Of a stretch of 64,000 bases of DNA, positions 20,866-38,367 are shown in pieces. The position numbers and the translations under genes were made by a program. Below the pieces are notes generated by a model that saw only the letters and a list, made by a program, of their open reading frames with translations, made no database searches and was not told where the DNA came from. The stretch's first letter is position 1; the number at the start of each line of letters is the position of its first letter. This DNA is from Paragordius varius (taxonomy: Eukaryota > Animalia > Nematomorpha): contig OZ176052.1 of NCBI GenBank assembly GCA_964247055.1, positions 6,262,001-6,326,000 of the forward strand, in the 5' to 3' direction.

Positions 20866-21856
20866 TTAAAGCAAGCGAACCTTTCAATTAAACAGCTGAA
20901 GCGATAGAAATGGTTAGCAATCTATTTATTTAAAAAAATGTTATATAAAGCTTTATACCATTTCCATCATGTCTTAAATAGTATGGCTTCAACAACTAAT
21001 AATTAAATTTTTTAAAAAAAATATGGATTTTTTTAAAATATTTTTTATTGATACCATTTTTGCGTTTATTTCGACGCTCACATCTGAAGTTAAAATTTTT
21101 TGAAAATGATGGTTTGCTGTTTATATGTAGTCTATAATATATTTTAGGGTTGTTTTCTGGAATGAAGCCTATAGCTTTCACCAAAAAAAATTATTTAAAA
21201 AATGCTCGCAATTTTTGCCATTTTTTTATATGGAGCAGTTGCTAAAAAAGTGATAATATCTTTCTTATATCAATGGTAGAGACCAAAATTTAAAACACAT
21301 GATAATCCTGGTACATTTTATTATCAAATTATATATTATTAATCAGGATATTTTTTATATCCCACTAATTTGGACGCAGTGTTGCGTAAAAATATGTTTT
21401 TAAACCTTTTCCTTCAGTCTTAAAATATTATGAATCACGCTTATACAAAACTTTGTAATACGTTAATAAGCAAAATATATATTTTTCGAAAATTACTATT
21501 CTTGATGTCACAATTTAGCATATTAAATATTTTATCGCGCAATCACGGCATTTTACGTTTATTGACAGAACTATACCATTTTGTAACAAAATATATGGGA
21601 ATTTCTAAGCCTATGTCTAAAATCATGATATTTTTGGATGAAGGATTTAGCTTTTACCAAAAATTTTATTTAACAATATTTGGACAATTTTTTTTGATAT
21701 AGAGCATTTACCATATATTTGTAAATAATTAAATCACTAGTAAGGACCAATACCAAAAGAACCATAACAATACTGATTATTTTCCCATCAGAATATATTT
21801 TATTATATTTTTTTGCAGACGCGGTGTATATTAAATATTCACAATGTGATATAATC

Positions 21857-24622
21857 ATGTGCGATGCAGTACGCAAAGCCAAAAACCAAACCCCCAAAAA
21901 GAAAAACTCGGACCCTATTTATGAATACACGGCCCATAATTGGGAATCTTATTTTGAGTGCGATACCGTTACAGATGATGGCACTGAGTCGTTTTTTTGG
22001 AGAGCTCATACTTTAACCGTCTTATTTTGTTTTGCTTGTATTTTATGCTTTGTCGCAGTTAAGGAAGCAAATCATTCAAGTCCACTTCTTAATCCCAGTG
22101 AATTAGAATATAAAGAAGCCTATAATTTTAAACGGGGGTTTTTGGCTTGTATTGGGGTATTTTTATTATTTGGAATTACTCAAACCCCTGATGGTCCATT
22201 TAAGCGGCCACACCCAGTAGTTTGGCGATTTATATATTGTGTCAGCATATTGTATGAGCTTCTTTTGATATTTTTGCTTTTTCAAACGCCTCAAACTGCC
22301 CGGACTTTACTTAAACACATTGATTCCGAATTAGGAAAGCCCTTACCAGAAAAATCTTATGGTGGGAATTGTAAAATTTATGATCCTATAAGTATAATAT
22401 TTTTATCTATATCTATAGATTATCCCAATGATCCATTTTACAACTTCAAAGATAAAATGGATGAATTCGTACCAACACATTTCCTTGGTTGGTGGTTTAA
22501 AACCCTTATAATTCGCGATTGGTGGCTTTGCATGGTTATGAGCATTATGTTTGAGATTTTGGAATACAGTTTGGAACATCAATTACCTAATTTTAGTGAA
22601 TGCTGGTGGGACCATTGGATTCTCGATGTTTTAATTTGTAACGGATTAGGTGATTTCGCATAATATATTTTTTTAATTTATACTTCTTAAAATAATAATA
22701 ATATGGAATGACAAGAAAATACCAGAAAAATTAAGTATCCCAATGAAAAATTGATAAAATTATAGAACACGATTTACATAAATCTGGCCTAAGACATTGG
22801 CAATATATATGTTAAAAAACATTTTTTTGTTAAAATTGATTATAGAATGTTTATCAATATTATCAAGTCATATCCCTTAAAAATTATAATTCTAATGAGG
22901 GATTATTACTCATTACTTTTTCATTTTTTGGGGGTAGATTTATATTTTAGAGCTTATTTATAAAATGCTGTTCGAAAAGTTGTTTTGATTAAAATTTAAT
23001 ATCAAACATTGTTATCCTGTTTTATATAGAAAGCTTAGAATTTTTAACTTCTACAATACGAAATGATAGCTTCACAACCCGATTGGAACAGGCTGATTTT
23101 AAATTTAATATCTTACAAAATTTACTGCTATTATAATATTTAAAAGCTTTCTTAGGCTAATTATTTACGTTTTAAACCATAATATAAATCTATTAGCCTG
23201 CTGTAATCGTTTGATAAAAATCCAAGGAAAAAAATGGCGGCAAAAAAGTTTGACTCAAGAATATTTTACAATTTTATACTTTTTAAATTTTTTGGATCAT
23301 GTGCTTAATAGGCTAAAGAAGGCATGTATTAATTTGGCCCAATAAAACACTTTTTATGATTTCAAATTTAAGATCGTATGTTAAATTTTCCGGACAGGTA
23401 ATGATCGTTACACATTTTTTAATCTAATATCTTTTTGATTAAACTTAAGTTTTTTAAAATTTGTATTAATCGTTGAACCAATGCCTTATATAATATAAAA
23501 AAAATTTAATTGTTGCTAGTGGCTTACAAGATCAGAATTCTATTAAAAAGTTAGTTTTTGAATCATTTATGTATATTAGCAATTTTTACTATTACATTCC
23601 ACCAAAATAAAATTTAATTATTCGGTAGAATATAGTTCTTTATCAAATAAAAAGTTATTTCTCTATATTAACCAATTGTGTATAATGAATTACTTTTTAT
23701 AGGCATATATTTGGGGATGAAAACGCTCGAATACCTGTGTATGAAACCATATCATTGGCGTGGTATGTGGAACATACCAGGCTACCGCGGTAAGCTTAAA
23801 CGCGCTGCAGCACAATTTAGTCCCTACAGTTGGATCATGTTTGAATGGAAACCGACGCAAAGTCTCAAGCGTTGGTTAGCTATGTTAGGACTCATTCTTA
23901 TATTTTTGTTGGCTGAAACAAACACGTTTTATCTCAAATATGTTTTATGGCTAAAACCAACACATTACTTAAACCTTGTACGCCTAATTTTTTTCTTGTT
24001 GGCGGGTGGGGTAGCCCTGCGTGAAACATTTCAATATCTTGATGATCCAAGGTGCAAAAAATTTGGTCGACAATCATGGGTAGTAGGTTCCATCATTATT
24101 ACCGAAATGTTAATCATTTACAAATTTGATCCGGATTTAGTTACAAAACCTTTCCCGCCTCGTATCTTTTGGGCTTGGTGTTGTGCGATCGCATGTTTAT
24201 GTATTTATACATTTTTCAAATTTTTTGTCGTTATTCACGACGAAGACTTATTCCTACGAATTCCATTCATGACTAACAAACTTAAAAGTTGTACACGGAG
24301 TCCCGTCGGGAAACGGATATGTGCCATGATATTACCCAAAACATATTTTTGCTTTTTGTCTGATGCCACATTTGGTACAAGTTGTTGCCCAAATATAAAT
24401 AATGATTATAAATCAAACTTTAAGACAAACCATTCAAACATTTTACCGTTTAAGTATGGAATTCAAACAAACGATAATGCGGCTTCCTATCCCATTTCTT
24501 ACAACCCTAAGTGTCTGAGTTCTTCAGCTATTAATCTTTTATCATCACAACAGGAAGATATAATTAGAGAGAAACGATATGTTAGGCATCGAACTAATTC
24601 TCAAGGTTTTACACCTGAATAA
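21857..24622 (+). CDS. PTDSS2: Phosphatidylserine synthase 2; exons 21857-22649 (possible 27-nt intron 22392-22418) and 23703-24622
   Basis: [69 protein letters not shown]|IYLG and QFSPYSW. A phase-1 GT-AG intron at 22650-23702 joins the two ORFs in frame. Confidence 0.95.
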
Positions 24623-24945: not shown

Positions 24946-27900
24946 ATGAATATGAGTCAAATAAATGAATCCAATTTATTTCGTAAAATTGATGATATGA
25001 TCACAGAAAGCAAATTAGCTGAATTATCACAAGCTAATGAGGATGCTGAGTTTGATAATATATTGGATCAATTACTTAAGTCAAAATTGGATACGTTAAT
25101 TTCTCGAAAGGAACAAAATCCTACTTTATCCCATGATAATCCCAGAGATGAGAATTCCGATTATTACGTTTTGTCATGCCCACAACATGGGAAAACTAAG
25201 TTTCAAACGACATATACTCAAACAGAATTCCAAACTTTTGCCGAAAGTTCAATAGATAATACAGGTAAATCGCCTCCAAACATTAAAAAAATCTCCAATC
25301 TACAGAAGTTAACATCTAAATCTCCTGTAATGACCGGATTTAATTTGGGTTGTAAGGTTCATTTTGTTGAGGATACCATGGTTGAGAATGATTTCGATTT
25401 ACAACATCCTGTAATGCAAGGAGTAAATTTAGGGTGCAACATCCAGATTGATCAAAAAAGCAAAAGTAATATAGCTGAAAAAACGAGTCAAGGTACAGAT
25501 AAAATACCAATTAAGGTTTCCTCAAGTCCATCTTATTTTAAAAAGTTAAGTGATAAAAAACCGAAAAAACGTCGAAAAAAAGTTATAGTAAATGCGCCAG
25601 GTAAATCTGTAAAGAACATTGGTTTATCAATTGATTCCAAAAAGGAAAACCCAAATTCTTCGACGGGTTCTAAATCATCAATTTTAAAAAATGTTAAATC
25701 ACCATCATCAATATCACCGTTATTAAATGAAGGCTCCAAGTTAATATCACCAGAGGTTAAGCAAGAAATAAGTTCAGACTTTAAATTAGATTGGGATAAT
25801 TTGACTCTCACAGATGAAGTACTTGGTAAGGGGCAATTTGGGGTGGTTAAAAAGGGTCGAGTAAAGCTTAAAAATGGAAAGGAATATGTTGCCGCTATTA
25901 AAACGATGCAATTGAAGTCAGGTAATAAAGGTAATCAAGATGCATTGAAAGACATGAAGAAGGAGTTAGGAGTTATGAGTTCACTTGGCCAGCATCCCAA
26001 TGTTGTGCAACTCTATGGTGCTTGTGAACATGAAGGCGATCTGTTTGTAGCCATGGAATATTTGCCGAAAGGCGATCTAAAGAAATTGTTAAAAAATTCG
26101 TCGGCCAACAAAGAGCCCATACCAGTTCTACAAAAGCTTAAATTTTGCCTTGACATAGCAAAAGGAATGGAACATCTTAGTGCTAAAAATTGGATTCATC
26201 GTGATTTAGCTGCTCGAAATATATTATTGACTGAAGATCTAACCGCTAAAATATCTGATTTTGGTTTAACTCGTGAAGGAAATAAATATATGATGAGGAC
26301 TCGAAATAAACCTTTGCCGGTACGTTGGATGTCGATTGAAGCTATCGATAAAGGCACTTACACAGAAAAATCTGATGTGTGGGCATTTGGCGTTACAATG
26401 TGGGAAATCTTCAGTAACTGTGAAATACCATTCAAGGGCAAAATTGATCGAAGTCAAATACTAGAATATTTGAAGGCAGGTAAACATTTGCATCAGCCAA
26501 TAACATGTCCCAATCAAGCCTATGAAATAATGAATCAATGTTTCAGAAATGACCCGGACCAAAGACCGACATTCGGAACTATCAAAACTAAACTCTATGA
26601 AATTATTCAAAGTATGAATGCGGTCGAAGATGCAAAAATTTACGAAAAGAAAGCCGAAAGTTATTGGGAAATTGATTATTTCACTGTAAAGTTTCCAGAC
26701 ATCCTACCAAAACATGATTTCCAGGGCAAAGATTTGGCAGTGACATTGTCTAAAAATAACAAAAGCATTCTGGCTTTGTGCAATTTTTTCTCTTTAACTG
26801 ATGAGAGAAATGAAATTAGATTGGAAATTGAAAATTTGAAAAACGAAATTAACATACTCAAATCTATTCCTAAATCGAAAAATATTTTAAGCTTGATCGG
26901 ATCAACCGTGTCCGATCGAAAAAATCTTTACGCCTTTTGGGAATATTGTATTGCTGGCCGTCTCAAAAATTTTCTCATGCAACATGATAATAAAATTACA
27001 ATTTTAACCGATTCCCTAAAGGTTCGAATATTGTTTGGTATTTCCACTGGTATGAATTTTCTTGCAACTCATAAGATTATCCATCGAGATTTAACAGCTA
27101 GGAATATTTTTTTAACCCAAAATTTGGTACCCAAAATTTGTTGTTTACGCAATGCTCGGAAGGGTGAAACATATATTCCCATGCATTTACCAAAACAAAA
27201 CCCAGCCCGATGGATGCCAATCGAAAGTCTCAGGGACAGAATTTTTACCGAAAAATCTGACGTTTGGGCTTTTGGGGTTTTGTGTTGGGAGGTTTGGACC
27301 AATTGTCTAACTTTACCTTATTTTGGTATGGAGCCATTAGAGGTTGTAACATTCATCGAACAGGGCAATAGACTTTCTAGACCTGAAACTTGTACAACTC
27401 ATTTCTGGGACACAGTTGTTGCACCATGTTGGAACATAAATCGAAGTGAAAGGTTTAATTGAATAAATACTTTCTGCAAAATAAAATTGACGTTAGAAAA
27501 ACTTTTGACCTCCATATCTAAATTCTTTTTTAGCAAGAAAAAACAAAAAATTAAATTACATCCTTTACGTGTATTTTTCGATTAACAAATAAATGGTCCA
27601 TACAACCAATAATATGGCTGTTTACCGTTTTAATAATCTAATTATGTGAAATAAAATAATGGCTTTGTACCCTTAGTGATGTATCAAGCCTAGTGATTCA
27701 TTAGTCATCAATTATATGATAAAAAAAGACGAAATATCATGAATGAACGAAGCATGCTAATAAAAAATTTGTTTTTGCTAACAAATTATTTCTAAAAAAT
27801 AAATTTTTTTATTTTTTGTTTTGAACAATTGCATATATAAAGTTTTAATGGAATGCAAAAAATTATTTACGATTAATTGGTCAATAATGAAACAACTAGG

Positions 27901-30900
27901 GTAAAACAAAGTTAGGGCAAATCGGAATATGGTAGGGGTTTTGTATGATAAATTTAGGAAAAAAATGTATATCCCTGAAAACTTAATGTGAGTATCGTGA
28001 GAGACCGTTTACTATAATTTTAGTATCATATAATCAGTCTATTAATAAATTATTTATTGATTATTGCCATGAAATGTAAGATATTTTATAAAATTAAAAG
28101 ATGTTACATTTTATGTATAAAAGTTATAAATCATAAAAAAATTCAAAATTACAAAAAAACAAATTTAATAATACAATAATAAGGTAATTTTTCAATAAAT
28201 ATTTGTTAAATTATATTTATTTGAGTTGCCGAATATCGGGCAAAGGAATCCAAGCTAATTATAAATTGTTGTAAAATAGACCGGCTTTTCACGCAATATC
28301 TTCCAAGATAAAACTTATAATGTTAAAATTCGATCCCGCCATGACGGCTTATGAGAACCATAAAAAGCTTGTAGAAGCTAAAAACGGACCAACCTTAACT
28401 AAGGAGCAATCACGAATACTTAAATCGTTGGTTGGATCTCAAATTTACGATGATTTTTTTAGCTGGGAACGCCAAAATGAAAACTATTGGAATATCGATA
28501 TTAGTTTGATTAATGTCGTTAAAGATACTGCTGATTTAATTCAAGAGCTAAATTACAAAATATCCCTTGCACAAATGAGGGCAAAGGATGGACAAAACGT
28601 CAAAATTTTGCTCAAAACTATCTATGAACAAGGTTTAAAAGATAAGGTAAATAATAATCTTGATATAAAATGGTAATTTTATAAATACTACAAGGATCTT
28701 AGATTAAATTTTTTACACTTTTTAAAAATTTATATCCCTATTTATTTGAATGATAAAGGCATTTATGCAAATTATCAATGAAGAATTGGAACTATTAAAA
28801 TCCATACCAAAACATCCTAATCTTTTGAATTTTATCGGTTTTAACAATTTAATACCGACCACATTGTATTTAATATATGATTCCAAAGAAAGGCAAGATT
28901 TAAAAGGATTTTTGCAGAATCCAAGCAATCTTATCAGTGAAATAACAAAGGTAAACACATATGTGATTGATTTTTATTAATTATCTATTTTTACAAGGCT
29001 TGAGTTAAATATTTCTTTTTATAGTGCTCCCTTGTACTAGGAATTTGTAGAGGCATGACACATTTAGCACAATATGGGATAATACATAGAGATTTGGGCG
29101 TAAGAAGCATTGTTTTGACCGATCAAAATACTCCTAAAATTACTAATTTTGAAAGGACAAAAAGGCATGGGGTGTTTTTAGATACAGATTTGATAAAAGG
29201 TAAAGTTACGAATTTTAATATGTATAAACATTGGCTGTGTTATATGGGCAAACATATAGATTTGATGTATAGTGAGGAAAAATAAAATTGTTCATTTTTC
29301 TGCAATTAAAATTTATAGTTCCACCTCTGGTTTTTCAAAAAATATTTTTAATTTTCTAAATTATAAGATTGCGTATTTACCGTTCGCATTTAGCTATTAT
29401 TAAGAAAATGTACCATAAATTAAAAAAATAGTTTTTCCCAGTCTCATTGTCTTATAATTATATAAAAAAACTTATATAATTTTATTATAAGGTGACACGG
29501 TAGACACCAAGCCCTTGTTGCTACCTGTTCGTTGGTTATCTCCTGAAGCATTTCTCCACAAAATTTACAGCGAAAAATCGGATGTATGGGCGTTTGGGAT
29601 AACTATGTGGGAAATTTATGAGAATGCAAAGAGACCGTACGATGAACTGTTAACGCCCAATGACGTGATTGAAAAAGTGATGATCGGATCACATAGATTA
29701 GATAAACCCAAGGACTGCTCTTTGCCAGAAACTTACAAAATAATGCAGAAAACATGGCAAAAAGATTCAATCGATCGCCCAAAATTCTTTGTATTATTGG
29801 ATGAATTAGAGACGTTAGTGGAAACATTAAAGTTCCCTATAAAAAAATTAATGCAAAATCTTCAAAATTTATACGGTAACAACGTGAAAGAATTGCAATT
29901 CGATCGATCTAAAGATTTGCGGGAAATGAAACAAGGGAAAACGATTAACCCATATTTAGAAATTGCTGAAGGCATATGGAAAGACGAGACTGTTAATATA
30001 AAAACGAGAAAAATCTTAAAATTGCAACATGCAACTTTAGTTTACAATGATATTTATGTGCTAAACTCATTAAAAAGCTTAACGTCTTCCTATGTTGTTA
30101 ATTTTCGGGCTTTTGATATATTGGGTGATAAAATTTTAATGATAATGGATTATTGTATGTATGGAGATCTACAAAGTTGCCTAAGAAAAGCTCAATCCCA
30201 AAATATTATCATAAAGTTTTCCGTGTTGATTATGTGGTGTCACGAAGTAGCAAAAGCTCTGTCTTTTCTACATGGAAACGGATATTGTCACAACCGAATT
30301 AAAAGCCTTAACATCCTTCTCGCTTCCGATTTTCATATAAAATTGACCAACTTTGAATATAGCTTTAAATCTTCTCTTACCTCAAATGATATGGCTGAAC
30401 ATATTGCTATGCTATCCTTACAATCAGAAGATTTTATACCTTGGATGGCAATCGAATTGTTACAATATAAGGTTCATCCTGTTTCCGATAAAAACGTTAG
30501 TAAAATTTTGACCCCAGCATCCGATGTTTGGAGCTTTGGAGTTTTTGTTTGGGAAGTTTTTGCATATGGTCGATATCCTTCTTTGGAATCTTTAAAGGTT
30601 TTAACCTATCAAGACATAGTACAGCGAATACAAGCAGGAGAACGTTTAATTAAACCATCGGACAAAATACCCGATTCCCTGTACACCTTTATAAGACAAT
30701 GTTGGGAAATGGATGATAATAAAAGACCTAATATAGCTCAAATTGTGGAATATTTATCAAAATTTTTAGAACCAAACGATGAGTCAAATATTGATGTTCT
30801 CAAAAAAATTATGCAAAATTCCTCTGAGTTACCTTTAAGTACAAAGACACAAAAAATTGCACAAGATATGTTTTGGATACTAGACCCAAAAACTGTGAAA

Positions 30901-33680
30901 ACATCAGCCAAAGAATTAGGACACGGAAATTTCGGAGTAGTTTTTAAAGGTAAAATTATTTCATTTGATATGTATCGGATTTTAATATCGTTTACTTGTA
31001 TTAATTATTTAACACATAAAAACATAACTTAAAAACTGTTCTTTTGAAATATTGTTATTAACCTATATCTATAATGTTTTTATTGGCTTTATAACTGATC
31101 TAGTATTGTATTTAAATTTTTGGCAAAATTAGCTAATACCAATATATTTTATCATCCCTAAATAAAAATCGGCCTTTTTATAGTTATTAACCCTTTCGGC
31201 AAAATCTATATTTATTCTAAAATAATATGCTATTGGGGGAAATCTTAAATGCATCTTTGAAGCAATTTTCCGGAAAAGTGTATGCCCATTTATTAGGTAA
31301 TTAAATTTTATTGAATGCGCCAAAATCAAGCATCTTTTATAAATACCTCGTTAAGCCTCAACCCCGCCAAAATAGCATTAAAATGATATTTTTCGCTATC
31401 CTACATCGAAAATAATACTGAGCCAAAAAGTTGTCAGGAATGCTTAAAATAGTGGCAATCCTACAATCCGTAAGCGTTTATCACAAAAATCCAAACCCCC
31501 ATATTTGACTTTGGACCAATTTTTTGGAAAACGTGGAACAAATAATTTAATGTAAAATCTACTTTCATTTATAAAGCGGCGATCATGGTTAACTTTCACT
31601 AATTAGCCATTGTGTTCAGCCCTATATTTTGTCATGCGATATAAATAATAATATGAATTGCTTGAATCAGATATTGAATAAAAAGTTAACGGTTTTACTG
31701 GCAATCATAGCTACAATATTATTGGTCCAATTAAAAAACCATGTAGATGGTTGTTAAGTACAAATGTTTGGGCAATCACTCTTAATTCATTTTTGGTCAT
31801 CAATTTATTGCAATAAATTTTTATCAATCTGATTCATAATGATCGTTTCATTTAAGTCTCTGCAAAGACAGGGTACAGCTAATGAGGTGAATATTATAAA
31901 TATCCTCTAGTATATACTGGTAAATATTTATTAATTTCATCGATTTTTTCGTTTCATTATATTGTTAGGGTCCCTAACTCATTTTAAATACTGTAAAAAA
32001 ATATTTTAACAATGTATGGAGGGCCTGAAAATCTATATCAGAATCGAAATATTAAACATATTAACACGATACAACACATTCATTTCAGTCCATCGATTCA
32101 AATTGGGGTAGTTGGTTATCCCAGGCCTGTTTAAAATTAAATACCTCAAAAAATATGAAATGAATTGAAACCATGGCAAAAGTTTGCACTTATATAACAT
32201 TAATGAACCGACATATAAAAATTCATTCAGAAATACTTGATATTACCTACTGGTAAAACCCAAAGGTAATAATTTAGTCAACCTGACATGTTATAAAAAT
32301 AATACAAAATTAACCTCATTTTCTGTTCCATCAATGTTAGATATCATTTAAAAAAATAGCTTTAATATTAGCTTTCATGGTGTTTAAAAGAAAAATAGCG
32401 TAATAGTTTGATATGGAACTGCTGTTCAAAACTATTTTTAAATATTTCGGCTTATTTATATAATTTTCATTAGAATAGAAGCATAAATCTAAATTGAGGC
32501 CGTTTCTTTCAGTAGTTTTTTAAAAATATTAACCAAAATATAGACTGAGGTATTTCGATACCCCAATTTGAATTAAAGTGTTAAATACATTAAATCTTTT
32601 CTAAATTATCTATCATTTAAGGGGATTTACTCAGGGACGGCAAAAAGGCTAAAGTTGCAATTAAATTTATTCTCGCTAAAGAGGAAAAAGTTGGAACGAA
32701 AATTGAACAAGCATTAAACGATTTCCTTAATGAAATCGTTATCCTCAAGTTAATTCATGAGAATGGGGTAGGCCACGCCCACATTATAAAATTCTTTGGT
32801 ATTATTTTGGATGATACGAAGAATGTTGAGGGACAGACGCTACAGATGGATGGCAAAAATATGAAAATTGTCCTTGAATATGCTGCCAAGGGTTGTCTTA
32901 AAACATTTTTAGAGTACCATAACCGTTTAAATAAATCAATATCCGAATCTAACATGCTATCATGGATCCATCAAATATGTGAGGGTATGAAATATTTGGT
33001 TGACCACAAAATTATACATAGAGATTTGGCATGTCGAAACATTTTGCTCGATAAAACGTATCGCTGCAAAATTAGTGATTTTGGATTAGCGCGGTGTGGC
33101 GAAACATACTTTAAACAATCTGAAGGCATGCAATTACCAGCCAGATGGATGGCCCCTGAAACCTTTACTCAGAAAGTTCAAAAAATTATTTTAAAAATAT
33201 TTAATTAAATAGTTAGTATTTTAATCCTAATAAAGGCATTACTTTTCAAATTTGATCTCACTCTCATATATAATAGTAATTTTAAATGGGTTGATTTTTT
33301 TCGTTTATATTACCTTTTAACTAAATAATAGAATTAAAATCTATGCAATCCCTTGATAACAAAAATACTAGGTTTTTAATGAAAAAACGGATGTTTGGTC
33401 TTTTGGTGTACTATGTTGGGAAATCTTTAGTTACGGAGAAGTACCTTACTCAGGCCTAACAGCTAAACAAATATTAACTGCAATCGAAAAGGGAAACAAA
33501 TTACTCAAACCATATTATTGCAGTCAAGTAATTTATGAAGGCATACTGTTGAAATGTTGGACCACGAATCCAGACGCTAGAACCTCATTCAAAGATTTAC
33601 AATCGGTTATTAACAACCTTTTAGACTCGCTACCGCCACCAAAATCACTGATGAATTGGATGGAAAAATTATTTTCTTAA
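24946..33680 (+). CDS. Multi-domain tyrosine kinase-like protein with five tandem kinase domains (~1,853 aa); exons 24946-27452, 28280-28646, 28759-28950, 29025-29199, 29492-30949, 32622-33175, 33372-33680
   Basis: Six GT-AG introns join the kinase ORFs in frame and restore split motifs (ER|PAF, GVVFKG|DLL...VAIK, TQK|VFNEKTDVWSFG). Domains 1 and 5 have GxGxFG, AIK, HRDLAxRN and DFG; domains 2-4 are degenerate. Confidence 0.88.
32065..32580 (-). mobile_element. piggyBac-like MITE family A in kinase intron 5
   Basis: Reverse copy of 5048-5603 flanked by TTAA at 32061-64 and 32581-84. Confidence 0.75.
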
Positions 33681-36126: not shown

Positions 36127-38367
36127 ATGGTTAGCATTCGCGCATTCGATGTGATGAAAGACCTTTTGTTCGCCTCGGTGCGACCATTGTCAAAGCTTAA
36201 TACCAATTTGCATAATAAAATGTCAAAAATTAAATACAATCCTACATCTGTAATTCCAGAAACTATGCCAGAAATTCCTAATAATATTATTTATAATTTA
36301 TGTGCTAGATTTTTGCTCAATATACCAAAACAAAAATTATCCGATCCATATCATGTTTTATTTTTATGTGAAGAAGCTTATTGGTTTTATATTGATTATT
36401 GCATTAATGATTATGACAATTCTCAAATTATTGAGATCGAACATCCTTGTGAAAGCGAATTATACAGATATAAAGAGCAATCCATAAATAATTCATCTTC
36501 CAACTTGCCGATGGTGTCATTCCATGAAATTACATTTTTATTATTAGAAAGATGTGGTTATTTGAAAACAATACTAAATACAGCTGCTAATTTAGAGATA
36601 TCATTTGATAACAATTTAAATCGTGCTCAATCTCCGTATAATCTTTTGGGGAAATTAATTATGCATTGGAAAAAATACAAAAAACTTTTACCGGTTTGTG
36701 GTGCCATAATTCTTGACGAAACCAGGCAATATGTCCTTCTAGTCAAAACTTATGAAGAAAAAGAAGAAAATGGCGCATGGATGTTTCCCCGTGGAAAAAT
36801 TATCCGAGAAAATGAAAAGGATTGGCAATGTGCCATCCGAGAAGTTTTTGAAGAAACAGGGCTTGATATTAGTCCTTACATAAATAAAAATTCATTTCTT
36901 GTTTTAAATGAACCAGATAGCAAGGACAAAAACTATGCAAGTCACACATCATCAATTTATCCAACACCAACTAAAACCATAAAATTATTCATTGTGTCCG
37001 GTGTCCCTAAATCTGTTCATTTTAAACCACAAACTCGTTGTGAAATAAGTGGAATTCAATGGTTTGATATACGCGAATTATATGCCCATTATCAAACCCG
37101 AAAGCTGATTAAATCAATGTTTCCCGATCACGATGTTGGGACGTACAAGGGTAACAAATTTTTTCAAGTAGATTACTTTATACGACAATTATTTCGAATA
37201 ATGTCATCACAACACCATTCCACGTTAGAAGGCGTCAAATTTGATGACAATCATCATCCACTAAACGGTCATAAGGTATCACCGTTAATTAATAGTTTGA
37301 ATTTGCAAAACAATTTATATAATGAATTTGACCCAAAATTTGTACAAAATCCCCATAACCAACAGCTCATTATGAATCCAAACCTTGCAGCAAATAGCAA
37401 CATTAAAAAGACGCCTCGACGTATAGATGATAAACGACCATCCATAATTCCAGCATTAGCCTTAGAGAGCGGGCCTACACACCATATTCATACCACATCT
37501 AAACATCACATTGTCCATGATGATAAAGTCACAAAGAGAAAACCTTTAAATATTTTACCTAATCTTAAATCTATGCCCCTTTCCCCTATATCTATAACCA
37601 ATGAATTGCTAGCCAATTTTGAACCAACCCATAATAATGACTTAACTCCCCTTCCTAAACAAATTACCATAAATGGAATAACCAAGCCTCTTACCTCAAC
37701 GCCACTTGTTCAAAATCGTAAATCTCGGGATAAGATTAGTGTGCACAAAAAACGGACTCATTTAGCAAGTGAAGGATGTGGACTGCTCAACTTCGAAAAT
37801 ACTAATGTACTCCAAAATCTGGCACATTCCAACAGTTTTTCTGCTACCAATACATCATCACAAAAACCCATAAGTTTATTAAAATTGTTTAGTGATAAAA
37901 ACGTTGACTTGAATGAGAGTAATCGCGAGGATAAAGTGATATGTGTGGAAAATATATTTAAAAAGTTAAATCAGGTACCAGATCTCAGTTTAAATACCAT
38001 CAAAACAACTAACAATAATAGCAAAAATGATGACAATGCTTCACAAATTAATAGCAATAGTAAAGGCCAAATATCGCTTAAAAATCGACTTATACCATCT
38101 ACCCCTGTGAATCAAGCCAATGGTCTAAAAAGTTCATTATCTTTACGACCTAATCATGCAAGTCTTCCAAGATCCATTGCTAAACAATTATTATTTAATC
38201 CTACCAACACATCGTTTGCGACACAACCAAAAAATGACACGAAACACATCACCAAATTAATCACGTGTAAGAATGATGATGTAGCAAATAATAAGCCCAT
38301 TTTTGAAGGACAATGGTTCAAAGTTTTAGATCTCAAACCTTGTTTAGAAGATATTTTAAATGCTTAA
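36127..38367 (+). CDS. DCP2: mRNA-decapping enzyme Dcp2 (Box A + Nudix) with long low-complexity C-terminus; intronless; start may be 36127, 36154 or 36220
   Basis: Box A (LCARFLLNIP...EEAYWFYIDY), LPVCGAIILD, Nudix box FPRGK...CAIREVFEETG and PQTRCEISGIQWF. Confidence 0.93.
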   Translation: MVSIRAFDVMKDLLFASVRPLSKLNTNLHNKMSKIKYNPTSVIPETMPEIPNNIIYNLCARFLLNIPKQKLSDPYHVLFLCEEAYWFYIDYCINDYDNSQIIEIEHPCESELYRYKEQSINNSSSNLPMVSFHEITFLLLERCGYLKTILNTAANLEISFDNNLNRAQSPYNLLGKLIMHWKKYKKLLPVCGAIILDETRQYVLLVKTYEEKEENGAWMFPRGKIIRENEKDWQCAIREVFEETGLDISPYINKNSFLVLNEPDSKDKNYASHTSSIYPTPTKTIKLFIVSGVPKSVHFKPQTRCEISGIQWFDIRELYAHYQTRKLIKSMFPDHDVGTYKGNKFFQVDYFIRQLFRIMSSQHHSTLEGVKFDDNHHPLNGHKVSPLINSLNLQNNLYNEFDPKFVQNPHNQQLIMNPNLAANSNIKKTPRRIDDKRPSIIPALALESGPTHHIHTTSKHHIVHDDKVTKRKPLNILPNLKSMPLSPISITNELLANFEPTHNNDLTPLPKQITINGITKPLTSTPLVQNRKSRDKISVHKKRTHLASEGCGLLNFENTNVLQNLAHSNSFSATNTSSQKPISLLKLFSDKNVDLNESNREDKVICVENIFKKLNQVPDLSLNTIKTTNNNSKNDDNASQINSNSKGQISLKNRLIPSTPVNQANGLKSSLSLRPNHASLPRSIAKQLLFNPTNTSFATQPKNDTKHITKLITCKNDDVANNKPIFEGQWFKVLDLKPCLEDILNA

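Follow-up and report, generated by a model that had tools for sequence, protein, structure and literature searches.

Does a single gene of the hairworm Paragordius varius encode a chain of five tyrosine-kinase (TK) domains that is complete at both ends and degenerate in the middle? The question is raised by positions 24946-33680 of a 64,000-nucleotide stretch (assembly GCA_964247055.1, contig OZ176052.1, positions 6,262,001 to 6,326,000 of the forward strand), the whole of which is called the window here. The initial annotation of this stretch, made from the letters alone, had proposed a spliced model of about 1,853 amino acids (aa) with five kinase folds. In the reading that we hold to be probable, if by a modest measure, the locus is a single intact, single-copy gene for a soluble protein with five TK-type domains, whose live ends flank a dead middle that would serve as allosteric partners in cis.

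A seven-exon frame with five kinase domains

The gene was located on the + strand at 24946-33680, where seven exons join into a 5,562-nt frame of 1,853 aa with one terminal stop. The six introns (827, 112, 74, 292, 1672, and 196 nt) are all bounded by GT..AG, and the phases agree at every junction. Each splice junction rebuilds a canonical element of a kinase domain (KD). The second domain ends in ..SE|RPAF.., a closing motif that is complete only once 27452 is spliced to 28280, the activation segment of the third is restored as ..DLIK-G-DTV..PVRW, and the fifth regains GHGNFGVVFK-G-..KVAIK and ..TQK|VFNEKTDVWSFG. At the local base composition, the 838-codon frame of exon 1 and the 513-codon frame of exon 5 have chance probabilities of ~3e-33 and ~1e-20, respectively. 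The exons have a GC content of 0.32-0.37 compared with 0.25-0.28 in the introns, and the window is AT-rich (0.24-0.37).

The database, family, fold, and structure searches took single exons or exon parts as query, while the joined 1,853-aa model was used for length, variant-to-codon mapping, the local kinase profile, and comparison with fetched proteins. The local profile found five near-full-length kinase domains (KD1 to KD5) in the joined model, separated by linkers of 31-63 aa, so that the proposed length and fold count were borne out. When the window was searched by tblastn with KD1 and KD2, five kinase-like blocks were obtained at 25786-33632 on the + strand and none elsewhere. Taken exon by exon, PF07714 (PK_Tyr_Ser-Thr) gave a pair of stretches in each of exons 1 and 5, a single match in exon 6, and a weak one in exon 4. 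The gene is present as a single copy in the 110-Mb assembly.

All five domains lie on the + strand. KD1 (aa 284-556, 25795-26613) is a complete TK with GKGQFG, AAIK, the alphaC Glu, HRDLAARN, DFG, an activation-loop Tyr, and PVRW. KD5 (aa 1547-1837, 30889-33629) is a complete TK as well, split by intron 5 between GHGNFG and VAIK and by intron 6 between PARWMAPE and ..TDVWSFG; it contains HRDLACRN and DFG, and the alphaC Glu and activation-loop Tyr are also present. The three domains in between are degenerate. KD2 (aa 590-852, 26713-28328), split by intron 1, has no Gly-loop, reads ALCN where the beta3 Lys is replaced, and carries HRDLTARN and CCL at the DFG position. KD3 (aa 916-1192, 28518-29826), spread over exons 2-5, has no Gly-loop and keeps the Lys, with HRDLGVRS and NFE at DFG. 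KD4 (aa 1224-1508, 29920-30774) is the most degenerate, with VNIK, HNRIKSLN, and again NFE.

The essential residues lost are the beta3 Lys and DFG Asp in KD2, the DFG Asp and catalytic Asn (Ser instead) in KD3, and the HRD Asp and DFG Asp in KD4. A pseudokinase is defined at the sequence level by a missing VAIK Lys, HRD Asp, or DFG Asp; this describes KD2, KD3, and KD4, while KD1 and KD5 keep all three. Judged by these residues, KD1 and KD5 are catalytically complete and KD2, KD3, and KD4 are pseudokinases, and the former two are predicted to be live tyrosine kinases. The motifs quoted in the initial annotation proved accurate for all five domains: the Gly-loop, VAIK/AAIK Lys, HRD, and DFG were present in KD1 and KD5 where they had been placed, and each degenerate motif of the middle domains occurred once, at its assigned position.

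By sequence, the array belongs to the TK group, with a PF07714 score ~2 times that of PF00069. TK-type catalytic loops are found in KD1 (HRDLAARN), KD2 (HRDLTARN), and KD5 (HRDLACRN) and are degenerate in KD3 and KD4, and the P+1 loops are TK-type across the five domains (PVRWMSIE, PARWMPIE, PVRWLSPE, P..WMAIE, and PARWMAPE). The structural core, comprising [ST]DVW[AS]FG of helix F, the subdomain XI Arg, and the alphaF Trp, is retained in all five. The domains share only 25-37% identity with one another. KD1 is the top PF07714 match of the whole genome (283 bits), and among solved structures it is closest to Tie2, Mer, and FGFR (E 1e-63 to 1e-51). KD5 is closest to FGFR3 and JAK2 JH1.

Structure prediction had been proposed in the initial annotation as a means of seeing how the domains pack. 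The expectation of kinase folds held for the parts modeled with AlphaFold. In the KD1-KD2 model, both domains fold with a mean predicted local distance difference test (pLDDT) score of 88, and the KD4 model reached a pLDDT of 89.4 and a predicted template modeling score (pTM) of 0.90. In Foldseek, the latter gave template modeling (TM) scores of 0.74-0.8 to the kinase domains of MerTK, FGFR2, and c-KIT. The pTM of KD1-KD2 was 0.57, and the packing between domains was not confidently predicted. By both sequence and fold, the KD1-KD2 tandem was matched best by structure 9p9u of the EGFR kinase domain duplication (EGFR-KDD), with a superposition TM score of 0.42 and a root-mean-square deviation (rmsd) of 23 Å.

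No signal peptide or transmembrane helix was detected in the product, whose maximum 19-residue hydropathy of 1.5 falls inside a kinase helix, and no SH2, SH3, FERM, or other Pfam domain besides the kinase was found in the exons, in line with what had been annotated. The protein is best described as a putative soluble, non-receptor one. Membership of the receptor tyrosine kinases (RTKs) was rejected on the missing signal peptide and transmembrane helix and on the distance of 323 nt from the start codon to the end of the upstream phosphatidylserine synthase (PSS) gene. There is a slight chance that an unseen 5' exon lies ahead of the start codon.

One product or several

A single open frame holds both KD1 and KD2, a second one runs from the KD3 C-lobe through KD4 to the KD5 Gly-loop, and introns 1-6 all interrupt domains (KD2, KD3, or KD5). 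With these three domains split by introns and more than one domain in each of the two long exons, the five domains are not divisible into separate intact genes. In independent DNA runs of at least two studies, exons and introns are covered collinearly, and joints that would rearrange them are absent apart from those in the repeat of intron 5. The contig sets of four DNA runs (27401-33400) say nothing on splicing, since they are DNA contigs covering the introns. From the DNA, we infer a single transcript with five domains.

It has some chance, though a small one, that the locus gives several shorter products instead of one five-domain protein. The candidates would be an 838-aa KD1-KD2 protein with intron 1 retained, ending at the stop at 27460-27462, and KD3-KD5 or KD5 alone made from starts within intron 1 or 5. 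The exon 1 frame continues three codons beyond the donor to a stop, so that KD1-KD2 would be translated almost in full if intron 1 were retained; introns 1 and 5, with 827 and 1,672 nt, are long as well as AT-rich; and we found no RNA run that would exclude such products. However, directly downstream of the acceptor at 28279 there follow, in phase, the RPxF motif and the last helix, both of which KD2 would otherwise lack. Furthermore, the KD5 Gly-loop is in exon 5 and VAIK is in exon 6, and a product begun in intron 5 would therefore be devoid of an ATP-binding loop. A single inserted copy of a repeat makes up about one-third of intron 5, and long introns are normal at this locus, as the neighboring PSS gene has one of ~1 kb.

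Relatives and origin of the array

A phylogeny per domain, which the initial annotation had also suggested, placed KD1, KD2, KD3, and KD5 with nematode and tardigrade TKs in a 17-tip clade (support 0.82). Within the tree, KD1, KD2, and KD3 were grouped at zero support, with KD5 nearby and KD4 unplaced on a long branch, and an intragenic duplication is not proven by the tree. A kinase domain of RTK type (Tie/FGFR-like) that was duplicated within the gene is the probable source of the array, and the NFE shared by KD3 and KD4 suggests that a domain already dead gave rise to both.

No close paralogue was found in the same genome, where the nearest relative is a WSC-FN3 receptor with 33% identity to KD1. 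This paralogue (L007:5705-8398; G000:C1:4995704-4998397, +) is an 898-aa frame with WSC and FN3 matches, and its kinase domain has HRK for HRD, NFG for DFG, and no Gly-loop. By these features it is a further candidate for a receptor pseudokinase in this genome.

As indicated by exhaustive HMMER with exon 1, polypeptides with several kinase domains are not a rarity in predicted protein sets, and uncharacterized ones carry 4-10 TK-like domains in tandem, most of which are degenerate. Examples are P0122 with five TK-like domains and a Drosophila grimshawi protein with four to six kinase domains; kinase arrays of non-TK type occur in oomycetes, a chytrid, Asteraceae, and Tritrichomonas. P0121 (ENA assembly ERZ25069412; 2,911 aa) is one uninterrupted frame with ten PK_Tyr_Ser-Thr domains, of which nine are degenerate in the Gly-loop, HRD, or DFG and the last is canonical. 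Members reach 2,961 aa, on contigs of up to 801 kb, and small SH3 and kinase open reading frames are situated just upstream of the ten-domain frame. Two long-contig ENA matches to exon 5, P0282 and P0286, were rejected as orthologues, being arrays of separate Ig-kinase receptor genes.

Constraint on the locus and weighing of the readings

Variants were taken from DNA runs over 27401-33400, exon 1 (to 27452) lying outside that stretch, and the counts given here refer to the 40 best-supported of 229 differences. Among these, 27 were exonic, comprising 14 synonymous and 13 non-synonymous changes where ~76-80% non-synonymous would be expected (ratio of non-synonymous to synonymous polymorphism, pN/pS, ~0.29; P=0.0017), and the indels were all intronic. 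The KD2 tail with its linker had 2 non-synonymous and 4 synonymous changes, and KD3 had 1 and 5, respectively (P=0.004). Selection on the coding sequence is thus purifying overall, and constraint is seen for part of the pseudokinase core, not for KD4.

Of the four runs over this stretch (X1-X4), X3 is labeled as a different species (organism B), but it contains 41% of the 31-mers of the locus. Some of its contigs are identical to the locus and others are 5-7% diverged, which suggests that the sample is mislabeled, that it comes from a very closely related sister species, or that the haplotypes differ markedly.

Several results weigh against the reading of a single, functional five-domain protein. 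In the run search, the matching runs were all DNA and no RNA run containing the locus was found; the runs guessed to be RNA under the same species label contain none of its words. An orthologue was not found either by word searches with exons 1, 5, and 6 or by exhaustive HMMER with exon 1, the best matches being generic TKs with 24-46% identity. The tree gives weak support to a common origin of the five domains. The inter-domain packing is not confidently predicted (pTM 0.57), and the rmsd to the JAK and EGFR-KDD tandems is 14-23 Å. In addition, the variants are a sample, namely the 40 best-supported of 229, and within it KD4 had 10 non-synonymous and 5 synonymous changes, a ratio indistinguishable from neutral.

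Some of these observations would also fit a young, lineage-specific tandem domain duplication that is drifting, in which the middle domains are relics devoid of a regulatory role and the gene is perhaps little expressed. We regard this as distinctly unlikely. The missing orthologue, the neutral ratio of KD4, and the long branches of KD2 and KD4 in the tree speak for it. However, the 5.5-kb frame is unbroken and each of the twelve splice sites is preserved, purifying selection acts on the KD3 region and on the KD2 tail with its linker, the core motifs (SDVW[AS]FG, the subdomain XI Arg, and the alphaF Trp) are kept in 5/5 domains, and KD4 is predicted as a confident kinase fold. Moreover, the low identity among the domains (25-37%) implies that the duplications are old and that the frames have stayed open ever since.

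It is highly improbable that adjacent tandem kinase genes were joined artificially, by the assembly or by the model, through chance splice-like sites: arrays of separate Ig-kinase genes do exist, and many "multi-kinase" proteins in the databases may be mis-joined tandem arrays, but the collinear cover of exons and introns comes from DNA runs of at least two studies, KD1-KD2 and the segment from the KD3 C-lobe through KD4 to the KD5 N-lobe are physically continuous open frames, and the domains are separated by neither a start codon nor a stop.

Proposed mode of action

For the preferred reading of one five-domain protein, the following mode of action is proposed. KD1 and KD5 would be switched on via phosphorylation of their activation-loop tyrosines, and KD2-KD4 would act as a rigid spacer and as allosteric partners that hold both catalytic ends off or on by contacts in cis. 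Through its polybasic N-terminus, the protein would be directed to a membrane or to the nucleus. That the pseudokinases scaffold or regulate the live domains is a reasonable analogy to JAK JH2-JH1, GCN2, and the activator-receiver pair of EGFR-KDD. If true, three TK pseudokinases between two live TKs would offer a compact test case for multi-step allosteric transmission, and the protein would reveal whether coupling is possible between two catalytic domains of the same chain.

A wider proposal, which is speculative, is that pseudokinase chains ending in a live TK form an unrecognized and repeatedly evolved signaling class, in which the dead domains would be a head-to-tail allosteric relay in cis that cooperatively sets the catalytic end or ends. 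The examples behind it are the live-dead-dead-dead-live hairworm protein, P0121 with nine dead domains and one live, and the four-domain tunicate proteins; the relay would resemble a string of EGFR-type activator-receiver pairs. The predicted proteins suggest that TK-like arrays arose several times in eukaryotes, unnoticed, and their recurrent origin is a tractable question for kinome evolution.

Exon layout, N-terminal region, and neighboring genes

Exon 1 (24946-27452, +) comprises the start codon, the 283-aa low-complexity N-terminus, KD1, a linker, and KD2 up to its last helix in its 838-codon open frame; it contains two PF07714 stretches (E 1.2e-133) and ends at the donor AAG|GTTTAA at 27453. 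Exon 2 (28280-28646, +) follows the acceptor AAATAG| at 28279 and carries the end of KD2, a 63-aa linker, and the start of KD3, with an Arg codon restored across the exon 1/exon 2 junction (phase 2+1). Exon 3 (28759-28950, +) encodes KD3 from alphaC to the hinge, between GT..AG introns and with both ends in phase 0. The KD3 catalytic loop and NFE are located in exon 4 (29025-29199, +), which gives a weak PF07714 match alone and whose phase 1 donor fits the exon 5 acceptor.

The 513-codon frame of exon 5 (29492-30949, +) covers the KD3 C-lobe, a linker, the whole of KD4, a further linker, and the KD5 Gly-loop, with two PF07714 stretches (E 7e-68). Exon 6 (32622-33175, +), behind the acceptor TTTAAG| at 32621, extends from beta3 to the P+1 loop of KD5 and matches PF07714 alone (E 2e-34); the exon 5/exon 6 junction (phase 1) completes the Gly codon begun at 30949. 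Exon 7 (33372-33680, +), with the acceptor TACTAG| at 33371, contains the KD5 C-lobe, a 16-aa tail, and the stop at 33678-33680.

An interspersed repeat at 32060-32600, for which no strand was assigned, takes up about a third of the 1,672 nt of intron 5 and lies outside the coding unit. It is ~540 bp long with 15-nt inverted arms (32096-32110 and 32559-32573), reaches a depth of 1e5-1e6 in DNA runs, and a first look at the genome gave >3,000 candidate copies with ~72-80% identity. Probably, it represents a non-autonomous element that is old and very abundant.

The N-terminus (283 aa) is Ser/Lys-rich and disordered. The low complexity and the basic KKPKKRRKK patch that the initial annotation had pointed out were both found, the patch at aa 204-212 (25555-25581, +), where by its motif it would be similar to a nuclear localization signal or bind membranes. 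No relatives of the N-terminus were found by Pfam, BLAST against fetched proteins, or Atlas. A short internal repeat is present in this region at 25324-25443 of the window (PVMTGFNLGCKV / PVMQGVNLGCNI, 28 residues apart).

Both neighboring genes are on the same + strand. The upstream one (21824-24622) is the PSS gene, with two exons, PF03034, and an intron of ~1 kb. The downstream one (36127-38367) encodes a Dcp2-type decapping enzyme with the DCP2 box A, a NUDIX domain, and a long low-complexity tail.

Comparison with known systems

Kinase-pseudokinase pairs in cis are known from JAK, GCN2, and plant tandem kinase proteins (TKPs), where they occur as one plus one and the dead domain acts as regulator or decoy (PMC13519141), and there are thirteen human two-domain kinases (PMC8449880). 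No description of a natural family with at least three TK-type domains was found in the literature searched (full text). The initial annotation had not recognized the architecture in any described family; this stands for that literature, while the uniqueness it implied was overstated, since uncharacterized TK-like proteins with 4-10 domains are public.

The JAKs (JAK1-3, TYK2, and hopscotch) are similar in being non-receptor TKs with a TK-group pseudokinase in cis beside a live TK, and they rank high in searches because both JAK domains match. However, they have FERM and SH2-like domains and two kinase domains, whereas the hairworm protein has five, of which the N-terminal one is live too, and no FERM or SH2. 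The KD1-KD2 model could not be superposed on TYK2 JH2-JH1 or full-length JAK1 (rmsd 14-23 Å), and the hairworm domains stand apart from the JAK domains in the tree. Membership of the Janus kinases was rejected because the FERM/SH2-like part is missing and the order is active-pseudo-pseudo-pseudo-active instead of JH2-JH1.

In EGFR-KDD, two tandem TK domains on one chain are said to form an activating intramolecular dimer (PMC12357603). Unlike the hairworm gene, which is germline and has five diverged domains, three of them dead, EGFR-KDD (PDB 9p9u) is a receptor rearranged somatically in an oncogenic manner, and its two copies are identical and active. The plant TKPs (e.g., WTK1/Yr15) and GCN2 also combine kinase and pseudokinase on one polypeptide, but their domains are Ser/Thr kinases (RLK/Pelle and PEK), whereas the five hairworm domains are of the animal TK type. 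A place among the plant tandem kinases was rejected, as all five are closest to animal TKs.

The predicted multi-TK proteins (P0121, P0122, P0124, and P0001/P0126) are similar in their head-to-tail PK_Tyr_Ser-Thr arrays, which have a period of ~260-300 aa and are mostly degenerate, with DFG often replaced by NF-x, as in hairworm KD3 and KD4. One BLASTP alignment to P0121 spans all five hairworm domains (24.7% identity, E 4e-125). The likeness is periodic and does not indicate orthology, since the identity is 23-27% and register-shifted alignments score almost equally. The tunicate protein of Clavelina lepadiformis (LOC143460772, P0124) has four domains and an SH3, as does P0001/P0126. The hairworm protein differs from these arrays in having no SH3 and a live domain at both ends, and its domains do not cluster with theirs. 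Membership of the tunicate-type multi-TK and SH3 arrays, which would call for an SH3 ahead of the last kinase domain, was rejected on the missing SH3 match and on the position of the domains elsewhere in the tree (weak support).

Among ecdysozoans, the tardigrade protein P0142 (Paramacrobiotus metropolitanus LOC129596353) has an unusual architecture, with an N-terminal Amidase_2 (PGRP-like) domain followed by two canonical tandem TK domains. It resembles the hairworm protein in its two tandem TK domains, which fall within the same 17-tip clade as KD1, KD2, KD3, and KD5, and differs in that both domains are canonical, in the Amidase_2 domain, and in an identity of ~33%. Compared with all these systems, the hairworm layout is apparently a lineage-restricted variant of the tandem kinase-pseudokinase proteins.

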